Shown piece after piece: positions 3,012 through 13,224 of a stretch of 23,016 nt of DNA. Under the pieces are notes generated by a model. The model had not been told where the DNA came from. It did not search any database and was given only the letters and a program-made list of their open reading frames with translations. The stretch lies in assembly GCA_964035545.1 (NCBI GenBank), contig CAXIUT010000294.1, forward strand, positions 1 through 23,016, read 5' to 3'. The first letter of the stretch is position 1, and each line of letters starts with the position of its first letter. Made by a program: the position numbers and the translations under genes. Origin of the DNA: Bugula neritina (Eukaryota; Animalia; Bryozoa).

Positions 3012-3244
3012 TGTGGACAAGACAGCAAAAACTTCCTATTTAGACAGCAAAAACTTCCCATTAAGCAGCAAAAACTTCCTATTTAGACAGCAAAAACTTC
3101 CTATTTAGGAAATTTATGAACGCTTGAGATGCTTACTGGATAAGGGTTTCAAGCGTTGCGCCACAAGCCCTAAAAAGATCTTTTAAAAGTTTATAAAAGA
3201 TCTTTTAAAAGGAACTGGGGGCAACAGCAAAAACTTCCTATTTA
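3012..3244 (+). repeat. oriV: DnaA-box-like site, four tandem 21-22-bp iterons, AT-rich repeats, fifth iteron
   Basis: TGTGGACAA (reverse complement TTGTCCACA) at 3012-3020. GACAGCAAAAACTTCCTATTTA-type repeats at 3021, 3043, 3065, 3086 and 3223. TAAAAGATCTTTTAAAAG-type repeat twice in 3171-3211. Confidence 0.92.
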
Positions 3245-3374
3245 ACACCAAAGCCTAAAATTCACGCAATTTATTCGGAGTGCATTGCAGACCTGATCAT
3301 TAAAACTTTCAACGTGTAAGTCCACACCGCTATACTGATCTGCGTCATTACTTCATAACGTCACAGTCACCCTT

Positions 3375-3992
3375 ATGAAATCAATCGCATTCCTTAGCCA
3401 GAAAGGCGGCAGCGGTAAAACCACGCTGGCAGTGCATACCGCAGTTACCGCGCAGGAAAGTGGGGAAAGCGTTGTCGTCATTGATACCGACCCGCAACAA
3501 AGTGCAATGACCTGGGCAGAAGCACGCACCACGGATATACCACCGGTAGCCGCCATCAACGCTAACGAAATACAAAAAGTATTCGCAGCTGCTGAAGGCG
3601 AAGCAATGACACTAGCCATAGTCGATACCGCACCACACGCCGCGCCTGAGGCCTCCATTATCGCGGCTAAGGTAGACTTGATTGCTATCCCAGTCAGACC
3701 GTCAGCGTTTGATATAGCCGCAGTAGGCAACGCAGTAGAGATTGCCAAAGCAGCCAACACCAAAACCGTGTTTGTGCTTTCAGCTTGTCCCTTTAGATCA
3801 CCAGAGATAACCGAAACACGCGAGCTGTTAAAAACCTATGGCTTACCTGTAGCACCTACCGACATCACAGAGAGACGCGCATTCTCGCGTGCGGTAGCAT
3901 CAGGTAGGGCAGTAACCGAATTTGAAAGCGATGGTAAAGCAGCTGCTGAAATACGCGCTTTATGGCAATGGCTGAAAGGAGAAATGCAATGA
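3375..3992 (+). CDS. parA: ParA-family (ParF-like, type Ib) partition ATPase
   Basis: Deviant Walker A KGGSGKTT, IDTDPQ, IVDTAP; 205 aa with no N-terminal HTH. Confidence 0.95.
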   Translation: MKSIAFLSQKGGSGKTTLAVHTAVTAQESGESVVVIDTDPQQSAMTWAEARTTDIPPVAAINANEIQKVFAAAEGEAMTLAIVDTAPHAAPEASIIAAKVDLIAIPVRPSAFDIAAVGNAVEIAKAANTKTVFVLSACPFRSPEITETRELLKTYGLPVAPTDITERRAFSRAVASGRAVTEFESDGKAAAEIRALWQWLKGEMQ

Positions 3993-4252
3993 CAAAGAAG
4001 AAAACAGGGCTGGCGCAGTTCACCAAGCAAAGCAGCCAGACCACACAGCAGAGTGAAACACAGGAAAGTAAACCCAGAGAGAAACAGCGCGGTAAGGGTG
4101 ATGTAGTTGCATTAACAGTACGACTGTCACGCGATGACTGGCAACGTGTACACCAGTTGGCGCTATCCGAAGGCGTTAGCATTCAACGGCTGGCAGTAGA
4201 CGGATTATCAAAGCTCTTTGAAGAAAAAGGGCTTAAAAAGCTCAACACCTGA
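3989..4252 (+). CDS. ParG-like ribbon-helix-helix partition protein
   Basis: ATGA overlap with the parA stop; AAGGAG RBS; unstructured N-tail then VALTVRLSRDDWQRVHQLA...IQRLAVDGL RHH pattern. Confidence 0.8.
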   Translation: MTKKKTGLAQFTKQSSQTTQQSETQESKPREKQRGKGDVVALTVRLSRDDWQRVHQLALSEGVSIQRLAVDGLSKLFEEKGLKKLNT

Positions 4253-4377: not shown

Positions 4378-4902
4378 TTAGAAAAAGCGAAACCGGTTAT
4401 CTTTCCACTCCTTACCATCAATCAACCCTTCCTCATATAACCCGGCCCAATCGTAAAAGAATGGGTACCAATCGGTGCTGGTGTGCAGTAACTGCATAGC
4501 CACCGCACACACTGCCACAATACCCCATGCAATCGCATACTCTCCAGCCTCACCTGTGCGCAGCCGTCCCCCAAACAGGTGAAAGCGTCGCTCTGAGTTA
4601 GGTGCGAAAGGTACACCGCTGACAGTCATGGAATCGGCGAGTACATGCGTAAGCCCGCCCCAGAAGAACGCGGCCAGGATGCCGTGGAAATCCCACAGCA
4701 ACAGCGCAAACAGTAGGGCGATAAACCAGCCCAACACGTAATGGGTGACGCCCCGGTGTTTTACGTCCTGGCCGGTAGTGGCCTTGATTACCCATTCCAA
4801 CCAATCCGGAGCAGTAGAACCAAGAATTGCGACCGGCACGAGTACCGGGTTAATAACAGCGGTGGTCGCGCCAGCGATGGCGATGTGATTAATCCATTTC
4901 AT
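4378..4902 (-). CDS. YdjM/DUF457-type membrane-bound metal-dependent hydrolase
   Basis: N-terminal His, GSTAPD, HRGVTH and THVLADSMT.SGVP motifs with several TM helices; ATGA overlap with the upstream gene. Confidence 0.88.
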   Translation of the reverse strand: MKWINHIAIAGATTAVINPVLVPVAILGSTAPDWLEWVIKATTGQDVKHRGVTHYVLGWFIALLFALLLWDFHGILAAFFWGGLTHVLADSMTVSGVPFAPNSERRFHLFGGRLRTGEAGEYAIAWGIVAVCAVAMQLLHTSTDWYPFFYDWAGLYEEGLIDGKEWKDNRFRFF

Positions 4903-5828
4903 CGCGGGGTGAGTTCCTTTTGTGGCACTGCTGAAATGTTTTTAAGCCAGGTGTTGATGGTTTTGGCATTGAGCGGGTCGCACAGTCCGGAGAGTTTAAG
5001 GCGGGTTTCGGTGATCTTTGCTTCCTGTTTGGTAAGGTCGCGGCGACTTTGTGCGATCTTTTCGAGGTAGGTCATTTGCTCCTTGGCCTCAGAAATACCT
5101 TGCTGGACGCGTAAGGCGGAGCGAGTCTCCATGCTCCGATAAAGCGCCACTTCCCGTGTGGCGAGGTTGCGGTTTGCGATGGCGGCCACGAAGTCGGCGA
5201 CGATGGTGGCGGTGGTTTGGCGTCGCATGGCTTCGCGTTCTTTTTCGCGGTTAAGTTCTTTGTTGGAGTACAGCGGCATGCTGGCAACGATTGCCACGTA
5301 ATTGCTGCCGAGTTCGGAAGTGCCGGCACCGGCGCTGCTGAGGATATTGGTTTCCTGTCCGTATTTAGCCAGCTGAGCGCGCAGATCCACATTGAGATTC
5401 CACTGACTGCGGGCGGGGTAACAATCGAGGATGTACTGATACACCGCATCGGTGTCGATGTTGGGTGCCTGAACCAGCGCAGGCGGTTTAGCCTTGAAGT
5501 TCAGTTCCTGCCCGCTGAGTGTTGGGATTTTATAAGGCTGCGCCTTTGGTGGTTGCCTGGGTTCCTCTTGTTTCCAAGGCCAAAAGCTAAAAATGCCGTT
5601 TTCTGCTGCCTCAGTGGCCTCAGAATCGGTTATCAGTAATTTTTCATAGTTCTCTATGGGCTTGGCGCTTTCAGCGTCGTACAGCGTCTCTGAGGCGGCG
5701 CTAATCGGCGCGAGAAGCGCGGCGACCAGTACCCAGGGCTTTAAGCCCGCCAATGACCAAAGCCGCTTCCCACCATCCGATGGCAAGGCAGCAAATGAGA
5801 AGAAACCACATGAGGATATGCGTTGCAT
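4899..5828 (-). CDS. Secreted hypothetical protein, C-terminal half resembling one TolC/OEP repeat (start uncertain)
   Basis: GAGG RBS before ATG 5828 (the track starts at TTG 5849). Signal-like KPWVLVAALLAPISAA. Beta-strand VAIVASMPLYS followed by long helices ending ETRLKLSGL. Confidence 0.7.
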   Translation of the reverse strand: MQRISSCGFFSFAALPSDGGKRLWSLAGLKPWVLVAALLAPISAASETLYDAESAKPIENYEKLLITDSEATEAAENGIFSFWPWKQEEPRQPPKAQPYKIPTLSGQELNFKAKPPALVQAPNIDTDAVYQYILDCYPARSQWNLNVDLRAQLAKYGQETNILSSAGAGTSELGSNYVAIVASMPLYSNKELNREKEREAMRRQTTATIVADFVAAIANRNLATREVALYRSMETRSALRVQQGISEAKEQMTYLEKIAQSRRDLTKQEAKITETRLKLSGLCDPLNAKTINTWLKNISAVPQKELTPR

Positions 5829-6429
5829 CGTAGGCAACCTCTGAATCAAGTCTAAAAATCTGGGGATCGCGCCGCAGTAACACCGGGCGCAGATTCGGGG
5901 GTAAGCGTTGTTCTTCTGAGGTCGCTACCACGGTCAGGCGCGTAGCCATCGCGCATTGACGTGCTATTTGTAATTTCCTGCCGGTGAGCTTGTGCGCATC
6001 GTCGATGAACAGCACCGGTTTTTTGGCTTTGCAATAATCAACCAGTGCGTTAGAACGGGCGTATTGTTTGAGTTTTTTCCAGGGTTCACGCTCGTCGAGG
6101 GGAATTTTCTTTTGTTCCTCATCCCACCATTCACTGACGGCGGGATTATCGTGCCATTCACCTACTGGGCTGAGGGTATCGAGGAAGATTGGAGTGGCTT
6201 TGATTTTTGCGCCCCAAATCTCGGTAGCGTTCTCATGCAGGCGAGTCAGCCAGCGCGTTTTTCCGGAGTCGTGTGCGCCGGTGACGAGGATTGGTTTTTT
6301 CTTGGAGATGACCTGCTCACTGGTGACTTTGCCGTACTTTTTAGTTTTGGTGACGAGTAATGGAACGGCAAAGCGCGAACCGTCCGCACGCACCTGATTC
6401 TTAGTGCGCCGTATTTTTAAATACTCCAC
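5701..6429 (-). CDS. P-loop ATPase (AAA-like) with C-terminal membrane anchor
   Basis: GTG start with AAGGA upstream. Walker A GAHDSGKT, Walker B VLFIDDAH. Hydrophobic ILMWFLLICCLAIGWWEAALVIGGL near the C-terminus. Confidence 0.85.
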   Translation of the reverse strand: MEYLKIRRTKNQVRADGSRFAVPLLVTKTKKYGKVTSEQVISKKKPILVTGAHDSGKTRWLTRLHENATEIWGAKIKATPIFLDTLSPVGEWHDNPAVSEWWDEEQKKIPLDEREPWKKLKQYARSNALVDYCKAKKPVLFIDDAHKLTGRKLQIARQCAMATRLTVVATSEEQRLPPNLRPVLLRRDPQIFRLDSEVAYDATHILMWFLLICCLAIGWWEAALVIGGLKALGTGRRASRAD

Positions 6430-6738: not shown

Positions 6739-7344
6739 ATGGGAGTTTATGCCTACCTGCGAGTCAGTACCGATCAGCAAGACGTGGACAACCAGCGCCA
6801 CGGCATACTGGAATATGCGAATACGCACAGCTTGGGAAACCTGCAATTTGTTGAGGATAGCGCCTCAGGGAAGACCAACTGGAAGGAAAGGAAAGCCGGT
6901 GAACTGCTGACTAAAACCATGCAGCCAGGGGACACCATTTTGTTTGCTGAGGTTTCCAGAATGGCACGCTCTGTACTGCAAATTTTAGAGATGTTGGAAC
7001 ACTGCGCAGCGCATGAATTTACCGTGCATATTGTGAAGCAGAAGATGGTGTTTGATGACTCGCTGAACTCTAAAATTACCGCTACGGTTTTGGGTTTGGC
7101 GGCGGAAATTGAGCGAGAATTTATCTCAATGCGCACCAAGGAAGCACTGGCTAAACGTAAGGCTGAGGGCATGGTTTTGGGTCGGCCAAAGGGGAAGGCT
7201 AAGCGGGTGAAATTGGATAAACGCAGTGCGGAGATCCGCAAGTATTTAGAGTTGGGAATCAGTAAGCGAGCTATTTGTAAGCTGGTGGATTGCTCACCTA
7301 GTACGCTTTATGAGTGGATTGAGCGGCGCAAGGTGGAGGTATAA
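6739..7344 (+). CDS. Small serine recombinase (resolvase/invertase) with C-terminal HTH
   Basis: YLRVST catalytic motif, SRMARS, AEIEREFISMRTKEAL, LGRP, HTH GISKRAICKLVDCSPSTLY. Confidence 0.95.
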   Translation: MGVYAYLRVSTDQQDVDNQRHGILEYANTHSLGNLQFVEDSASGKTNWKERKAGELLTKTMQPGDTILFAEVSRMARSVLQILEMLEHCAAHEFTVHIVKQKMVFDDSLNSKITATVLGLAAEIEREFISMRTKEALAKRKAEGMVLGRPKGKAKRVKLDKRSAEIRKYLELGISKRAICKLVDCSPSTLYEWIERRKVEV

Positions 7345-7706: not shown

Positions 7707-7729
7707 AACCCGCCGTTGATTGGCGGGTT
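7707..7729 (-). terminator. Intrinsic terminator after the RHH gene
   Basis: AACCCGCC...GGCGGGTT hairpin 5 nt past the stop at 7735. Confidence 0.55.
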
Positions 7730-7734
7730 AGTAT

Positions 7735-7956
7735 TTATAAGAAAATCCGCAGTTCCTTCGTTTCTCCAGATGAATTCCGAAGCATCAAAGAGCCGCCTTT
7801 CTCATACTCTTCAATTAACATGTCATACAGGCGGTAAGCGTTTTTCGTGACTTCTGCGTATGAAGCTGCTTCAGTTTTTTCCTTCAGCGTTTTCAGTCGC
7901 TCTATGGATGGTGGAGGTAACTCCATCTGTACCCGGACTGTATCTTTTTTGGCCAT
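7735..7956 (-). CDS. Ribbon-helix-helix (CopG-like) protein
   Basis: AAGGAG RBS; VRVQMEL strand followed by helices SIERLKTLKEK and SYAEVTKNAYRLY. Confidence 0.75.
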   Translation of the reverse strand: MAKKDTVRVQMELPPPSIERLKTLKEKTEAASYAEVTKNAYRLYDMLIEEYEKGGSLMLRNSSGETKELRIFL

Positions 7957-8188
7957 CTTTACTCCTTAGAATGAGTTCTGTTGAACGTTCATTCTTAACC
8001 TGGATTTCGAGATTGCCTAATCCATAATGGTAAAAGGCAGCTATTGCAAATCCCGTTAACACACAGGAAGCGATTGCAGTGATGGCAATAATTTTCCAAT
8101 GCTTCCAAATCCCAGTTCTTTTTGAATCAGTAATTTCAAATTGAATAACATTAATGTCATTCGGTTTACGCCTAATCTCAAATTTCAT
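7871..8188 (-). CDS. Single-TM hypothetical protein
   Basis: GAGG RBS; TM segment IIAITAIASCVLTGFAIAAFY; overlaps the downstream RHH gene by 86 nt. Confidence 0.55.
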   Translation of the reverse strand: MKFEIRRKPNDINVIQFEITDSKRTGIWKHWKIIAITAIASCVLTGFAIAAFYHYGLGNLEIQVKNERSTELILRSKDGQKRYSPGTDGVTSTIHRATENAEGKN

Positions 8189-8423
8189 GATAACCTCACA
8201 TAAAACCTGAGGATTCCACGCAACTCAAAACCAAATTAGGTAGAAGGTGTATCCTTCTTTTGGTGGTTTTTAAAGTTGTCAGAATGCCTCAGTCTTTTTA
8301 GGACTAAGGACAACTGCCAACTTTGAAAACCAATCAGAGAGTAGAAACCTAAAGCTTCCTTGTTCTTCATCGTTCGTTGTGCCTTATATAAATTTTTTGT
8401 AAAAATGTCATTTAAATCTTGAT

Positions 8424-8462
8424 AAGGCTACTAACTTGGAATTTTTTTAAGTTAGTAGCCTT
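8424..8462. repeat. 14-bp perfect inverted repeat
   Basis: AAGGCTACTAACTT-N11-AAGTTAGTAGCCTT. Confidence 0.8.
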
Positions 8463-8697
8463 ACTGCTTTGTGAGAATACGCATACTCATCCCATGAAAG
8501 AGGGAATAAGGGTGGCTGATGTTAAGAGTCTATTCTCTGATCATAGACATCTAAGTCTCAATACCCCGTTAGCTCCTGCTAACTTCCCTAAAATTTTCCA
8601 AAATGAAACCATATCAATTATACATCAAAAATTGATGTTTTCAAAGTATTGAAAATGAAGTTTTCGCTCTATAAGTCGTTAAGGAATGAATGTCCGA

Positions 8698-8725
8698 AAG
8701 TAGCATAATCCGGATTACGCGCATA
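8698..8725 (-). other. dif-like XerC/XerD site A (11-6-11)
   Basis: - strand reads TATGCGCGTAA-TCCGGA-TTATGCTACTT; each arm matches 8/11 to E. coli dif (GGTGCGCATAA-TGTATA-TTATGTTAAAT). Confidence 0.6.
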
Positions 8726-8983
8726 AGGCTGCAAGCCCCGACGCAGCTTGTTATAGCAGGTTAGGAAGGCTTCTGTTCTGCAAGCTCCACACAAGCCAGC
8801 GTTCATCAACATTCCGTCCCGGCTATCTTCTGGCGCTGCCAAAAGAAAACCGGAACGGAATGAAAAGCGGTGACGCTTGCACGGTTTGGGCTTTAAACCG
8901 GTTCCGCTGCGCTCCACCGGCTAAAAGCCCAAACCGCACCGCGTAACCATAGTGTTTATTAAATATGCCGTTGTAGCATCCTG

Positions 8984-9018
8984 CTGCTGTTCCTGCTGTT
9001 CCTGCTGTTCCTGCTGTT
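8984..9018 (+). repeat. 9-bp tandem repeat (CTGCTGTTC), about 3.9 copies
   Basis: Read directly from the sequence. Confidence 0.9.
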
Positions 9019-9202
9019 TTGGTGCTGGCTCTAATGCTTTTGTTTTTGGGGTTGGCAGGGTATTGCTGTTTGTTAATGGGATACGTCCTGCTTCAGGCGC
9101 TGTGCTTGCTGTACGGTTTTGTTGAGTGTACTTGGCCATTAGGTTGCAGAGCATGGCAGTTGCCGTGCCTGGGAGGCTTTGCCGTAGTGGTGTAGTTAAC
9201 CC

Positions 9203-9296
9203 GCCCTGGCATCCGGCTTGCATTCTTGTCAGGCGTAAACGGATATTTTTATATCCAAAGTGTTTGCCCCTGACAAAGCAAGCCGGATGCCAGGGC
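9203..9296. repeat. 94-nt rod-like hairpin
   Basis: 19-bp perfect stem GCCCTGGCATCCGGCTTGC/GCAAGCCGGATGCCAGGGC, inner TTGTCAGG/CCTGACAA, apex GGATAT-TTTT-ATATCC. Confidence 0.9.
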
Positions 9297-9353
9297 TATG
9301 CTGTGCTGATCTAGTGCGCCGGTGTGCTTGGTACCGCTCTGGAACGCTAAGGA

Positions 9354-9448
9354 ATGGGGAAAAGTTACATAACGCCGTATTATGCGCACGGCCCCGGCGT
9401 TCTGACCCCGTACCATGCGCATAAAGGAATTATGTAAAATTTCCCCAT
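9354..9448. other. Two inverted dif-like sites (B 9362-9390, C 9414-9440) forming a fold-back
   Basis: B (- strand): CGTGCGCATAA-TACGGCG-TTATGTAACTT. C (+ strand): CATGCGCATAA-AGGAA-TTATGTAAAAT. Closed by ATGGGGAAA/TTTCCCCAT. Confidence 0.7.
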
Positions 9449-10502
9449 GCGTGATGCGCACATTGTCCCGGTTCTTGCCTGCTTAATAAGGTTCCGCAAG
9501 CTCCACCCTATACGCGAGCAAGAACAGCGCCAACGGTGCGCCCTAGCCGGATAGTCCGGTATTGCTCCGATCCGCGCCCGCTCTCGCTCTGCCGCCTGCG
9601 CTCGTTCCCTCCGCGTCGGACTAAAGCCGCTGGCTTGTTTCGCCTTGCTTGTCCCGCTAAAAAGCAAGCGGAACAGGCGAAACGCGGCCTAAGTCCGCCG
9701 CTGCGGTAACGGCTCCGGTGGCGTCGCTCGTTTGGTCGCGGCTCTGCGCAATGTCGGCGGGTGATGGTGGTGGCTGTCGGATAGATTGTGTGCGCCTCCC
9801 TTTGTGGTCGCTTCGCGGTCGCTGCGCTTAGCTCTCCCGGCGGTGGCGCTGTGCGCCCTTCGCGGGAAGCGTTGTGGTCGTGGCGGCGGCCTTTAAGTGC
9901 CTGGGTAGGGTGTCGGGCCGGTCGCTCTCTCCGCGTGAAAACAAACCGTAAGCGTTCCGCCCTCGTTACCCCGCGATGAAGCTGCGGCGCGGTTGGAACA
10001 CGGCTTGTTTTCGCGCTGCGGTCGCGGCCTGCCCAGAGCGGCGGGGTGTGGCGGTGGTTGTCGGTGTTTACTCCCTGCGCCGCTTTGGTCTTGTCCTGCG
10101 GGGTTGTCTCCCGGCCCGCGTTGCTGAGCGGGAACCGGTGCGGTACGCGGGGCGTGATTTGGTTGGCGCTGCGCTCGCAAAGATAAAAGCAAAAGCTTGG
10201 TTTACATGAGCGTGTCGGGGCTGTGAGCCGACACGCTCCCGCGCTAATGATTTAGAAACTGAGTGCAGCCGTACAAGTGCCGCCCGCCACTTTTTTGGCG
10301 CAGGAGCTGCGCTAAAAAACCGACGGATCGGCGCTTGACGGGGAAAGAGAGGGAGTGTTTTTTTGCTATAAAAATCAGTGCCTTACATCAGGTTTTTGTG
10401 GATTAAGTTATTGATTTTTAATATAATTTAATATGCTGGATGTCAGAGTGATATATTAATTTCTACTGGCATTTGAACAACGTCATAAGAGATTAATTAA
10501 AG

Positions 10503-11513
10503 ATGGAAAAACAATATACGTCGATTGAGTTGTGCGCTGGTGCGGGTGGTCAGGCTTTGGGGCTGCATCTGGCGGGTTTCCATCATCGGCTGTTGATTGA
10601 GATAGAGGAGCCGGCTTGTAAGACGCTTAACTATAACAATGTGGTGCATTCGTTAGGCTGGGACTCGATTCTTCAGGGGTGTGTCACTGAGTTCGCTAAC
10701 AATGAAGCGGATAGGTATGAAGGCGTTGATTTGGTGGCGGGTGGTGTGCCTTGTCCTCCATTTTCAAAAGCCGGAAAACAGTTAGGCAAAGACGACGAAA
10801 GAGATCTGTTCCCTTCTGCTCTAGAGATCGTTAGAAAAACACAGCCTAAAGCCGTTATGTTGGAGAATGTCTCGGGCCTTCTCGATGCTAAATTTGATGC
10901 TTACCGTGAGGGTATCGAATCGCAGCTTGAAGAAATGGGGTATCAGTCTTTTTGGAAGTTGTTGAATGCATCATCGTTTGGTGTGCCTCAGTTACGCCCA
11001 AGAGTGGTTTTAGTGGCTCTGCGTCCTGAGTATGCAAATTTCTTTGCGTGGCCAGATTATGAGATTACTCCGCCTACTGTTGGTGAAGCGTTGTATGACC
11101 TGATGGCTGAACGTGGTTGGAAGCATGCTGAAGAATGGAAAGCGAAGGCAAACAAGATAGCGCCGACGTTGGTGGGTGGTTCAAAAAAGCACGGCGGGCC
11201 TGATCTTGGGCCAACCAGAGCCAGGCGCGCATGGCAGGAACTACACGTTAATGGGAACCTTATTGGTAATGAGCCACCTGAGGCTGATTTTACTGGCTAT
11301 AAAAATAAAGAAGGCTACGAGTATATGCCGCTGTTGACTGTGAGAATGGCGGCTAGGATTCAGGGCTTTCCTGATTGGTGGACATTCCACGGCAAGAAAA
11401 CGCCGGCTTACCGACAAATAGGAAATGCTTTTCCGCCGCCGGTTGCCGAGGCGGTGGGTAAACAGATTATTCATGCGCTGGCGGCAGCAGATAGCTTGAA
11501 GCAGGCGGCTTAA
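10503..11513 (+). CDS. DNA (cytosine-5) methyltransferase, M.NgoMIV/M.NaeI-like (predicted target GCCGGC)
   Basis: Motif I ELCAGAGG, IV GVPCPPFS, VI ENV, VIII QLRPRV, IX ARIQGFPD, X RQIGNAFPP. TRD IAPTLVGGSKKHGGPDLGPTR as recalled for NgoMIV/NaeI methylases. Confidence 0.95.
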   Translation: MEKQYTSIELCAGAGGQALGLHLAGFHHRLLIEIEEPACKTLNYNNVVHSLGWDSILQGCVTEFANNEADRYEGVDLVAGGVPCPPFSKAGKQLGKDDERDLFPSALEIVRKTQPKAVMLENVSGLLDAKFDAYREGIESQLEEMGYQSFWKLLNASSFGVPQLRPRVVLVALRPEYANFFAWPDYEITPPTVGEALYDLMAERGWKHAEEWKAKANKIAPTLVGGSKKHGGPDLGPTRARRAWQELHVNGNLIGNEPPEADFTGYKNKEGYEYMPLLTVRMAARIQGFPDWWTFHGKKTPAYRQIGNAFPPPVAEAVGKQIIHALAAADSLKQAA

Positions 11514-12187
11514 CTGTCTTCCTGATCGTCGAGGTAGTAGTTAGCCGCGTCTTCCATCACCTTATCGCGGCTTTCCCCTGATTGGCTACTATAGGCATCA
11601 ACGCGGCGTAGTGTTTTTTCTCCAATAGATACCATGGTGGGTATTCCACACTTTTCAGGAAACGCCCAGGAACAAGTGTTGCAGTCTAATGCGCAACCTT
11701 CACAAGCACGACGTTTGCCCACGTTGCAGTTATTGCACATGGGTTGCCAGTTCGCTATTTCATTCCCGCCGCCACGTGACAAGGGTACTTTGTGGTCTGC
11801 TTGTAGGCCTCTGACGCCTGGTGCAACTTGTTTACCGCAGGTGCTGCACACGAACCCGGCGGCTTCAAACAGTTTGCTTTTCTGTGACTGGGTTAAGTAA
11901 TTCCGATCCTGCACAGCGTTGAGGTTGGGTGAGCTGATGCGCCAAGCGTGGCCGGCGAAATCTTCGATATACATGCTTTCCAGGTCGCAACCCATTTGAT
12001 CGCGCAGTTCTCTGGCGCGGCGGTCAAAGTATTTTTGATCGGTGAGGGCTAGTAGTTCAGCTGAGGAAACCCAGGGCTTTGGAAAGGCGTCTCTTTCCTT
12101 GCCCCATAGCCGCCTCAGTATTTTTTCTTTTACTGTGCTGAGCTTGCGTTTGTTGGGAAGTTTTTTGAGATAATTGTCTATGTTCAT
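11510..12187 (-). CDS. HNH endonuclease with N-terminal winged helix (putative cognate restriction enzyme)
   Basis: CSTCG...ADHKVP...GGGN...NWQPMCNNCNVGK, extra CxxC pairs, and RRARELR wHTH-like segment. ATG 12187 preferred over the TTG at 12292. Convergent 4-nt overlap with the MTase. Confidence 0.85.
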   Translation of the reverse strand: MNIDNYLKKLPNKRKLSTVKEKILRRLWGKERDAFPKPWVSSAELLALTDQKYFDRRARELRDQMGCDLESMYIEDFAGHAWRISSPNLNAVQDRNYLTQSQKSKLFEAAGFVCSTCGKQVAPGVRGLQADHKVPLSRGGGNEIANWQPMCNNCNVGKRRACEGCALDCNTCSWAFPEKCGIPTMVSIGEKTLRRVDAYSSQSGESRDKVMEDAANYYLDDQEDS

Positions 12188-12274
12188 AAGTTGCGTTTTC
12201 AATAGCGAGTGAGGGGAGTATGAGCTGAATATGGCAACAGGTATAGAGGCTTTGTTTCTTTTGCAAGCCACTAA

Positions 12275-12290
12275 GGATATAATAATATCC
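12275..12290. promoter_or_regulatory. Palindromic operator-like site GGATA-N6-TATCC (other copies at 7377, 9241, 12369, 12601)
   Basis: GGATATAATAATATCC lies between the divergent HNH and RHH genes and overlaps a TATAAT hexamer. Confidence 0.65.
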
Positions 12291-12309
12291 AAAACATGGG
12301 AGTTATATT

Positions 12310-12606
12310 ATGAGTGTCCAAAAGCGTTATCACATTCACTTTAGAGGGCGTCGGACTACAATCACAGTGGATAATATTGTATCCGAATTGCTAGCGGTTA
12401 AGCTGGGGGTGTTGCCGGATGCACCGGAGGCTCACGCATTGGTCAGGGATTGGCTGGAAAAAACGCTGCATGACAAGCTGGGTGAGAATGTACCGGGTGG
12501 GAACCGAATTAGTCAGTATGCACGAGTGTATGCGATTGAAGCACTGGCGGCTAAAAAACTGATAAGCCAGGTGTGGGAGTGGCGCTTGGCTAAGGAAGAT
12601 GGATAA
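12310..12606 (+). CDS. Small RHH-like DNA-binding protein (candidate regulator)
   Basis: GGGAG RBS; KRYHIHFRGRRTTITVDNIVSELL beta-rich N-terminus followed by helices; divergent from the HNH gene. Confidence 0.7.
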   Translation: MSVQKRYHIHFRGRRTTITVDNIVSELLAVKLGVLPDAPEAHALVRDWLEKTLHDKLGENVPGGNRISQYARVYAIEALAAKKLISQVWEWRLAKEDG

Positions 12607-12809
12607 CACTCTATCCTTTGTTGAGTGTCTGGAATTTGATTTAAACCATAAAATGATTTTTATGGACGGATAAAGGTGTAATTAAACCAAATTTGGGGGT
12701 TTCAAACGTTTAGCTTTAAGGATGGTTTGTTCTAGACATAAACAAAGAGATCGTGCTGAGAAGCACTAGATAAGGTGATGGAGGAAGTTAGATAGTGGCG
12801 TGGAGCCTA

Positions 12810-12879
12810 TTGACATGATGTATTTTTCATGCACAATAAAAAACCATGTGACGTGTTCCTGGTAAGAGACATCACATGG
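12810..12879 (+). promoter_or_regulatory. Putative sigma70 promoter followed by a hairpin
   Basis: TTGACA-N16-CACAAT (12810-12837); CCATGTGA...TCACATGG IR (12844-12879). Confidence 0.4.
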
Positions 12880-12920
12880 CTTATTTCGATTTAGAGAAGC
12901 TTTATGGGGATAGTTTCCTC

Positions 12921-12949
12921 AAAAGCGTTTGTTTTTTAACGCTTTTTTT
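12921..12949 (+). terminator. Intrinsic terminator-like hairpin
   Basis: AAAAGCGTT...AACGCTTTT running into a T7 tract. Confidence 0.45.
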
Positions 12950-13224
12950 GTGGGCTAGCTCATAAGTTTCCAAAAAATGGTTACTTCTCACTATGTACAT
13001 GCTATTCAAAACCAGAAAATCATCACAGCTAGAAAATTTTCTTCAAGCTGTCTTCTCATTGTGTGCCCCTTCTTTTTTTTCTCGAACTTTTCTAGCAAGT
13101 GTTTTCAGCGAGCTTGTGCTGAGCAGCTACGTATCATGTGAGAAATTTTTTAAGGCGAACGGCGAAAATATGAAGTTTAAGTACTTAGTTAGTTCAAATC
13201 TTTTTAACACGGTTGGTCAATGTC

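Follow-up and report, generated by a model that had tools for sequence, protein, structure and literature searches.

A 13,510-bp circular plasmid in the Bugula neritina assembly GCA_964035545.1 carries a hairpin-rich module of ~1.67 kb that is very probably a real, functional structured noncoding element. The stretch analyzed (contig CAXIUT010000294.1, positions 1 to 23,016; hereafter, the window) writes the plasmid ~1.7 times (repeat offset, 13,510; 0 mismatches over 9,506 bases), and as part of this repeat the region recurs in truncated form from 22170 onward. Comparison with relatives shows purifying selection on both the stems and the unpaired blocks of the module. Where a strand preference exists, it is for the minus strand, and the right-hand third is neutral. 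We tentatively favor minus-strand single-stranded nucleic acid, most probably one or more structured RNAs, as the working form.

The plasmid belongs to a so far undescribed family found in Thiothrix and related uncultured bacteria. Searches of PLSDB and phage collections gave no megablast match even with the whole plasmid as the query, and a single distant match of 71 nt led to the Thiothrix members; relatives were reached through this weak DNA match together with synteny and then, for the closer metagenomic ones, through homologs of a 316-aa backbone protein. Most matches from pattern scans of genome and metagenome contigs were due to chance, the real ones being L011, L012, L018, L023, and L026, and scans of viral contigs returned no homologs. 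Nine complete plasmids, representing five species of Thiothrix (T. lacustris, T. winogradskyi, T. unzii, T. fructosivorans, and T. subterranea), share the backbone; in them, the order is a resolvase operon, 1.1 to 2 kb without convincing genes, a conserved AT-rich block, and an operon for 95-aa and 136-aa proteins. A profile of the Thiothrix module matches the window at 9494 to 9821 and 10268 to 10431, and plasmids from four Thiothrix species whose Rep proteins are quite different share the module at >90% identity. Among closer relatives, L051 aligns to window positions 9194 to 9944 at 87% identity, L033 has hairpins 1 and 2 (~72%), and the right-hand core is found at 68 to 79% in L032, L034, L035 to L037, and L052. 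The Thiothrix relatives are typed as nonmobilizable in PLSDB, and no description of the noncoding region was found in the literature on Thiothrix plasmids.

Evidence for selection comes mainly from the sister plasmid L030, whose Rep is 92% identical to that of the window plasmid and whose homology begins at ~8766 and extends to the AT-rich block. Positions 8766 to 10340 align at 82% (82.1% over 1,561 aligned bases), with 88 to 91% identity across 9301 to 10080, 89% across 9541 to 9900, and two relaxed stretches (8941 to 9190 and 10081 to 10340) at 67 to 70%, the first of which is the spacer around a 9-nt tandem repeat (67%). In the seven genes shared by the two plasmids, coding DNA is 84.9% identical and 4-fold degenerate sites are 58.1% identical (n = 633), which is near saturation. 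Because the identity of the module lies far above that of 4-fold sites, purifying selection on it is about as strong as that on genes. Stems are 87.1% identical and nonstem positions 78.8%.

An initial annotation, made from the sequence alone, had described the region as noncoding and placed nine stems in it; all nine are present at those positions, and the noncoding character was confirmed by comparison with L030. Indels between the two plasmids (lengths of 1, 1, 3, 15, 1, 12, 9, and so on) do not keep to multiples of three, and open reading frames (ORFs) differ between homologs. The interpretation as a protein-coding gene or pseudogene failed, as ORFs in the module are short, differ between the window and L030, and have no Pfam matches; the called “226-aa” product in L035 is arginine-rich junk. 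The plus strand from ~9540 to 10180, noted earlier as GC rich and A poor, has 66.5% GC and 10% A.

Covariation is strongest in a rod-like hairpin unit. The window contains two paralogous units of ~300 nt (~9556 to 9890 and ~9890 to 10200), each with a long hairpin and the same apical motif; the lower stems of the paralogous hairpins differ completely in sequence and keep their pairing. Nine copies were used to build a covariance model of the rod unit (R1), which detects the unit in 19 of 19 module-carrying loci in constant relative orientation, with E values of 1e-9 to 1e-11 in the distant Thiothrix plasmids and with no further copies elsewhere on the plasmids. The unit (~100 nt) is the center of a longer rod-like hairpin of 165 to 200 nt in both lineages and occurs once in most family plasmids and twice in the window, L030, L002, and L023. 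When 22 distinct copies are compared, both partners have changed in 17 of 27 pairs. Pairing is kept in 93.9% of cells, compared with 76% in shuffles and 35 to 49% with partners slid, and the covariation score is 0.478, compared with 0.166 in shuffles (0/500 as high) and ≤0.119 with slid partners; these numbers are somewhat flattered by an alignment fitted to R1, though the margin is large, and DNA hairpins would covary likewise. Conserved secondary structure with covariation, a criterion of structured noncoding RNA, is thus found in the rod unit, and of the checks proposed in the initial annotation, covariation among collected homologs gave a strong signal there, whereas the Rfam scan gave no match. 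Double compensatory changes were also counted, with 11 in hairpins 1 and 2 of L033 and 27 in the right cluster; hairpin C has 9 such changes in L034 and compensatory changes in L030 and L032 as well.

Folding of the module exceeds that of dinucleotide shuffles on both strands, with z values of −8.1 (plus) and −10.1 (minus) for 8766 to 9540 and −3.9 (plus) and −4.1 (minus) for 9541 to 10340. The expectation that plus-strand folding would beat shuffles therefore held, but the minus strand does so slightly more. Raw energy in the right half is lower on the plus strand (−389 versus −340 kcal/mol), and this reflects composition (G+T richness) rather than structure, since the shuffles shift equally (−365 versus −306 kcal/mol). 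In 200-nt windows, the GC-rich core at 9700 to 10200 folds no better than shuffles on either strand.

Folding specific to the plus strand, as originally claimed, did not survive stem-by-stem comparison: six of the nine stems (8810 to 8862, 8882 to 8936, 9354 to 9448, 9471 to 9525, 9613 to 9701, and 10274 to 10337) are better on the minus strand, two (9203 to 9296 and 10209 to 10238) are equal, and only 9901 to 10036 favors plus. The claim had been based on G-T pairs on the plus strand, and its first example (CTGGGTAGG/CCTGCCCAG) lies in the outer 9901-to-10036 stem, which is present only in the window and L030. For the six left hairpins (8810 to 9701), the minus strand is favored in 18 of 19 hairpin-by-homolog comparisons (L030, L033, and L051) by 1 to 17 kcal/mol, and non-Watson-Crick stem positions in hairpins 1 to 5 are wobble pairs on minus 37 times and on plus 8 times (summed over related, nonindependent sequences), counts that come from few sequences and serve as an indication, not as a formal test. 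Most single substitutions in L030 and L051 give wobble pairs on the minus strand. In hairpin 1, which is also better on minus in L030 and L033, all three single changes in L030 do so, and L033 contributes five double compensatory changes. The consensus fold of hairpins 1 and 2 has an energy of −66.2 kcal/mol with a favorable covariation term on the minus strand and of −47.4 kcal/mol without a covariation term on the plus strand. The homologous rod of ~165 nt in four Thiothrix plasmids is 13 to 22 kcal/mol better on minus (z = −7.2). Mutation pressure is an unlikely cause, because the bias opposes the local composition of a G+T-rich plus strand. The general idea of a functional structured element that probably acts in single-stranded form, in a single-stranded DNA (ssDNA) phase or as a novel RNA, is upheld by selection, covariation, and strand asymmetry, and only its plus-strand basis is lost.

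Sequence-level conservation also includes loops and unpaired DNA. The apex of hairpin 2 (GGTGGAGCGCAGCGGAAC, minus-strand reading) is nearly invariant in the window, L030, and L033, and similar motifs occur at the top of hairpin 5 and at 8776 to 8790. Hairpin 3 is better on minus and partly decayed in L030 and L051. Hairpin 4 is conserved as far as the Thiothrix plasmids, where its equivalents in L002, L003, and L005 differ in their outer pairs and vary in the inner part. At its base, rod unit 1 pairs CAUUG with GGAGCAAU (minus strand). The mostly unpaired block that follows it is kept in L001, L002 (twice), L003, and other Thiothrix plasmids, and the Thiothrix equivalent of hairpin C abuts the same TTGACGGGGAAAG motif as in the window. 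The AT-rich block beyond is presumed to be the promoter or operator of the downstream plus-strand operon, here the m5C methylase at 10503 and in relatives the 95-aa/136-aa operon.

The position of the module is fixed in relatives, with the resolvase side of the backbone on one flank and the AT-rich promoter block on the other, at the border of variable cargo. Its interior is more flexible: insertions split it in L004 (2.2 kb) and L030 (400 nt), the rod unit is duplicated in L002 and L023, and the left hairpins are lost in L035. The module is thus modular: its hairpin domains are strung together semi-independently and do not make up a single large fold. The L004 insertion (9299 to 11383) consists of three genes at profile positions ~847 to 863, all on the strand corresponding to the minus strand of the window. 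Genes inserted beside or inside the module in relatives all have this orientation, namely, the three L004 genes, the genes for TIR and glycosylase proteins in L030, the ORC/Cdc6-like gene in L051, and a 520-aa gene in L033.

A single-stranded working form is suggested because stems covary despite sequence turnover, because of the strand bias, and because apical loops are invariant and unpaired blocks conserved. RNA is slightly preferred over ssDNA because the constraint covers >1 kb including unpaired sequence, far beyond known priming sites, and because genes inserted in relatives are all in minus orientation, as if that strand were transcribed. One or several structured RNAs would be transcribed leftward from near the AT-rich block, antisense to the two flanking plus-strand operons, and a protein or a partner RNA would recognize the invariant apical loops and the conserved unpaired blocks. 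Possible roles include control of the neighboring operon or cargo, plasmid maintenance, and interference with the host or rival elements.

Several observations weigh against this RNA reading. No window match reached the gathering score in Rfam 15, which returned only far-subthreshold hairpin look-alikes (microRNA precursors and similar; E values up to 5), and a scan of L005 and L030 returned nothing. On the minus strand, neither a sigma-70-like promoter nor an intrinsic terminator was found within the module or at its ends, either in the window or in Thiothrix; no −35/−10 hexamer pair matching at least 9 of 12 positions with a spacing of 16 to 18 nt occurs in 8660 to 10340 on either strand or in the Thiothrix module, and hexamers sought by eye on the minus strand of the AT-rich block were not conserved between lineages. 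The hairpins do not end in the GNRA, UNCG, or CUUG loops that structured RNAs usually have. Tolerance of insertions, unit duplication, and loss of parts in relatives means that the module is not one large globular RNA. Consensus energies of the right-hand core (9880 to 10345) are strand neutral (−121.0 on plus and −121.7 on minus), and the strand counts, as said, come from few related sequences. Finally, the asymmetry is equally strong with DNA parameters, depends on few G-U pairs, and arises mainly from purine-rich internal loops on the minus strand, so that energy asymmetry cannot separate RNA from ssDNA.

The last point bears directly on the main rival, which on our analysis is unlikely: the hairpins may act in a minus-strand ssDNA phase as primosome or primase initiation sites or as hairpin promoters after helper transfer, as do ssi and Frpo elements. 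Such hairpins reportedly lie in the leading regions of the conjugative plasmids F and ColIb-P9, in work attributed to Masai and Arai (1997) and in later work. Like them, the module consists of long, imperfect, strand-preferring hairpins with paralogous repeats (the ~300-nt units) in one orientation in noncoding plasmid DNA, and the hairpin strand is the template for the genes downstream of it, here the conserved adjacent operon with its perfect TATAAT; the hairpins nearest that operon are strand neutral. The persistence of the asymmetry with DNA parameters, the missing promoter and terminator for an RNA gene, and the identity of the module across four Thiothrix species with different Reps, which suggests recent horizontal spread without visible transfer genes, are also in keeping with such a phase. 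Unlike ssi and Frpo, however, the module is GC rich, has no −35/−10 hexamers in any stem, and is accompanied by no oriT, relaxase, or leading-region genes: neither relaxase, coupling protein (T4CP), nor HUH Rep was found in the window or relatives, and ssb, psiB, and ardA were found neither among the window genes nor in relatives. Sequence-level constraint over ~1.3 kb, including unpaired blocks, far exceeds the needs of known ssi sites, replication starts from a canonical iteron origin 5.5 kb away, and the plasmid-wide positive GC skew suggests that the plus strand is more often single stranded. The same skew, together with a MOBQ-like GGTGCGCCCT on the plus strand, G-T pairs on plus in stem 9901 to 10036 and in some pairs of 10274 to 10337, and several G-U pairs in the plus consensus fold of the core, could be cited for the original proposal that the functional strand, RNA or ssDNA, is plus. 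That proposal is nevertheless quite improbable: six of nine stems and the homologs of the left six hairpins favor minus, as do the Thiothrix rods, the core consensus energies are equal, the outer 9901-to-10036 stem is not conserved beyond L030, and the raw plus-strand energy advantage is compositional.

If the module acted in duplex form, as a protein-binding array that regulates or shapes the promoter block or as a maintenance or incompatibility region with palindromic binding sites, the high conservation of unpaired blocks, the recurrence of short motifs (GGTCGCTWCGCGGT, CAATGTCGGCGGG, and GCCGCnnGCGGC), the fixed position beside the AT-rich block, and the small DNA-binding-like proteins (RHH and TrfB related) that accompany it in the family would all be accommodated. 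We consider this improbable, as arms of 25 to 45 nt stay paired despite complete sequence turnover between paralogs and lineages and as a consistent strand asymmetry would not be selected in duplex DNA. A MOBQ-type oriT, nicked on the plus strand after GGTGCGCCCT (9544) next to the inverted repeat at 9471 to 9525 and mobilized by a relaxase in trans, is highly unlikely. The MOBQ nick-region consensus is NWACCNNTAAGTGCGCCCTYNN (PMC3832669), and exact matches to its 9-nt core occur at 9536 to 9544 and 9851 to 9859 (plus), the first of which is kept in L030 and L051. The match is confined to the 9- to 10-nt core: the ACC..TAA positions and the Y after the nick are unmatched (the base after the nick is A), the 11-mer is more than one mismatch away, and with one mismatch allowed the core gives 4 matches versus 4.7 expected. 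An inverted repeat does precede the core, ending 10 nt before it (the consensus implies ~5 nt); the strand opposite the core is the one on which its hairpin folds better. In the Thiothrix copies, site 1 reads ACGCGCCCG, site 2 is not conserved in L030, and no relaxase was found, so that GGTGCGCCCT at 9535 to 9544 is a weak lead. The least credible explanation, which we regard as very remote, is that the region has no function of its own and consists of decayed genes or selfish palindromic repeats (miniature inverted-repeat transposable element or REP-like) in a cold spot. It lacks annotation, 8941 to 9190 and 10081 to 10340 are only 67 to 70% conserved, and hairpin 3 decays in L030; but identity far above that of neutral sites, synteny and orientation fixed in all relatives, covariation, the absence of further copies elsewhere on the plasmids, and the lack of a conserved frame all speak against it.

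Taken as a structured noncoding plasmid element that acts as a single strand, the module is known in kind, but its form matches no described family. Covarying rod hairpins, among them a unit that varies in copy number, make up a 1.1- to 1.7-kb chain that is fixed in the backbone of a Rep3 plasmid family. Like GOLLD, ROOL, OLE, and HEARO/omega RNA, it is long, gene free, conserved above neutrality, covarying, and located on mobile DNA; unlike them, it has separate rod hairpins in a row in place of multistem junctions, tolerates insertions and unit duplication, and has no Rfam match and no promoter or terminator that we could find. The orientation-dependent rod hairpins of 100 to 200 nt in noncoding DNA recall single-strand origins (sso; ssoA, ssoU, and others) and the filamentous-phage minus-strand origin, but the present plasmid encodes a Rep3 initiator, carries 22-bp iterons (theta type), and has no HUH Rep, and the CS-6 hexamer occurs once, outside any loop. 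The ColE1 RNA II and RNA I region likewise combines a small plasmid with several hundred nucleotides of highly structured, untranslated sequence whose hairpins matter on one or both strands; unlike in ColE1, all family members have Rep3-type initiators, the iteron origin is 5.5 kb away, and no RNA II-like promoter was found. A MOBQ oriT of the RSF1010 type shares the inverted repeat followed by GGTGCGCCCT on the plus strand (9471 to 9544), without the flanking consensus, the conservation in Thiothrix members, or the relaxase. Integron attC sites and REP palindromes likewise are imperfect palindromes of 55 to 140 nt that fold preferentially on one strand, but here the hairpins are all different, in fixed synteny, and not dispersed, there is no integrase, and none of the ten stems has the attC R''/R' cores (RYYYAAC ... 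GTTRRRY) on either strand.

Several specific candidates were rejected. The module is not oriV, as the iterons lie elsewhere (3020 to 3108 and 3224 to 3245) and none lies inside it, and no convincing DnaA box was found in it. An sso was discarded given the Rep3 initiator with iterons in place of an HUH Rep and a single TAGCGT at 9344 (minus), between hairpins; an Frpo-type ssDNA promoter was discarded because no stem holds a hexamer pair; and a ColE1-type RNA-primed origin was discarded because Rep3-type genes occur in all family plasmids and no promoter was found. An IncP-type nick look-alike (CATCCTGC; YATCCTGY) at 8977 to 8984 (plus) is unsupported by flanks or conservation.

To our knowledge, few small plasmids, on which space is scarce, carry long noncoding regions under strong selection. 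In each of the understood cases (RNA II, ssi/Frpo, oriT, and large noncoding RNAs such as GOLLD and ROOL), a separate mechanism of replication, establishment, or conflict came to light. The present module may represent a previously unseen class of structured RNA carried by plasmids, a modular 1.1- to 1.7-kb chain of rod hairpins with variable unit copy number, antisense to its neighbors, that has a core backbone function beside defense-type cargo (restriction-modification here, a TIR effector and an ORC/Cdc6-like ATPase in relatives); such an RNA could be a regulator, a decoy, or a scaffold. Equally allowed is a novel type of hairpin array that is active as ssDNA, on a theta plasmid lacking its own transfer genes. 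With a defined family, boundaries, a covariance model of the core unit, and cultured carriers (T. unzii A1 with pTunz7, T. fructosivorans ATCC 49748 with pTfr12 and pTfr21, T. winogradskyi CT3, and T. subterranea Ku-5), the function of the module is now directly testable.

Table 1. Features of the hairpin module and of the plasmid that carries it (energies in kcal/mol)
Feature	Position	Strand	Remarks
Whole noncoding module (hairpin array and AT-rich block)	~8766-10431 (~1.67 kb)	minus	Strand is that on which most hairpins fold best
Hairpin 1	8810-8862	minus	-38.5 on minus versus -26.4 on plus
Hairpin 2	8882-8936	minus	-35.6 on minus versus -29.5 on plus; six double compensatory changes in L033
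9-nt tandem repeat, (CTGCTGTTC)n	8982-9020		~4 copies in the window, ~7 in L030 (~4440-4520)
Hairpin 3, 94-nt near-perfect palindrome	9203-9296		-65.5/-64.5; strands equal in the window
Hairpin 4 (ACATAA...TTATGT type)	9354-9448	minus	-53.7 on minus versus -42.4 on plus; minus also better in L030 and L051
Hairpin 5	9471-9525	minus	-21.7 on minus versus -14.4 on plus
Rod-like hairpin domain, unit 1	9556-9752	minus	Covariance-model match at 9610-9713
Conserved, mostly unpaired block	9749-9819		CAATGTCGGCGGG ... GCGCCTCCC ... GGTCGCTTCGCGGTCGC
Rod hairpin unit 2, paralog of unit 1	9929-10028	minus	Invariant apical motif CCGCAGCTTCATCGCGG (minus-strand reading)
Hairpin B	10209-10238		Strand neutral; conserved in L030, L032, L034, and L035
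Hairpin C	10274-10339		Followed by family-invariant TTGACGGGGAAAG (10327-10339)
AT-rich block	10371-10431	plus	In all family members; perfect TATAAT at 10422-10427
Rep3 initiator	2125-2922	minus	
ParA and small RHH partner	3375-4252	plus	
YdjM-like hydrolase, 316-aa protein, AAA ATPase	4378-6429	minus	
Serine resolvase	6739-7344	plus	
m5C methylase	10503-11513	plus	Converges on HNH nuclease
HNH nuclease	11510-12292	minus	

The nearest relatives of the Rep protein are those of Thiothrix plasmids (~50% identity). Four tandem 22-bp iterons (AGACAGCAAAAACTTCCTATTT) lie beside rep at 3020 to 3108, with a fifth copy at 3224 to 3245 and AT-rich, GATC-containing repeats at 3173 to 3211; this region (3020 to 3252), between rep and parA and 5.5 kb from the module, is unambiguously a canonical Rep3 theta origin. 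In L005 (13598 to 14102 plus 1 to 584) and L008 (11105 to 12118 plus 1 to 207), Rep3-type genes span the record origin and are seemingly absent from the PLSDB table; a Rep-less, RNA-primed replicon was rejected accordingly.

The 316-aa protein (4899 to 5849, minus) and the 242-aa AAA ATPase (5701 to 6429, minus) are encoded by overlapping ORFs, and the pair, part of the backbone in Thiothrix plasmids, also occurs on many Vibrio and Photobacterium plasmids at 36 to 42% identity. Roughly 90 additional contigs encode homologs of the 316-aa protein. The AlphaFold model of the 316-aa protein has an N-terminal hydrophobic segment and a long coiled coil, at low confidence (pLDDT, 66). No match in Pfam, NCBIfam, PHROGs, or PDB was found for these two proteins or for the 95-, 136-, and 98-aa proteins, and these searches revealed no disguised nuclease, relaxase, or primase in the backbone set, no fold search having been made with the low-confidence model. 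The 98-aa protein (12310 to 12606, plus), which is 83% identical to an L032 protein and 60% identical to one of L005 and has an RHH-like N terminus without a family match, is, judged by these homologs, part of the conserved accessory set of the family. Exact-protein lookups for four window proteins returned no record.

The cargo that flanks the module looks defense related. It comprises a CAP12/Pycsar-type TIR protein and a Fapy-glycosylase-like protein in L030 (5091 to 6867), an ORC/Cdc6-like ATPase in L051 (1301 to 2899), and the m5C methylase and HNH nuclease of the window (10503 to 12292). In L034, the AT-rich promoter block occurs twice, before the 98/101/136-aa operon (12769 to 12839) and before a homolog of the window methylase (11733 to 11880); the window has a single block (within 10371 to 10520) directly before the methylase and has probably lost the 95-aa/136-aa genes through recombination between two such blocks. 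These genes persist in L030 as frameshifted remnants (~1830 to 2573).

The annotation of deposited Thiothrix plasmids is corrected in that several “hypothetical proteins” are ORFs called across the noncoding element. Those at L001 5795 to 6178, L002 12544 to 13083, L003 9682 to 10107, L008 6461 to 6982, and L035 3994 to 4674 look like spurious ORFs in GC-rich noncoding DNA, being arginine and proline rich and without a conserved frame. Conversely, an unannotated 34-codon ORF for a strongly hydrophobic peptide is present in L005 (4287 to 4391) and at the same place in L003, L004, L007, and L008; it overlaps (ATGA) the stop codon of the 84-aa gene that follows the resolvase and is nearly invariant in Thiothrix plasmids and absent from the window.

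Left of the module, a minus-strand block (7707 to 8644) is specific to the window and without a homolog in relatives. It opens with a strong promoter (TTGAAA-16-TATAAT; 8644 to 8617), followed by a leader of ~190 nt ending in a perfect 19-bp hairpin (8463 to 8423), encodes a 105-aa membrane protein (8188 to 7871) and a 73-aa RHH-like protein (7956 to 7735) with good Shine-Dalgarno sites, and is closed by a terminator (7729 to 7707). Elsewhere on the plasmid, the noncoding stretch at 12700 to 13000 also folds better than shuffles (z values down to −5.1 on the minus strand) and contains an inverted repeat at 12838 to 12885.

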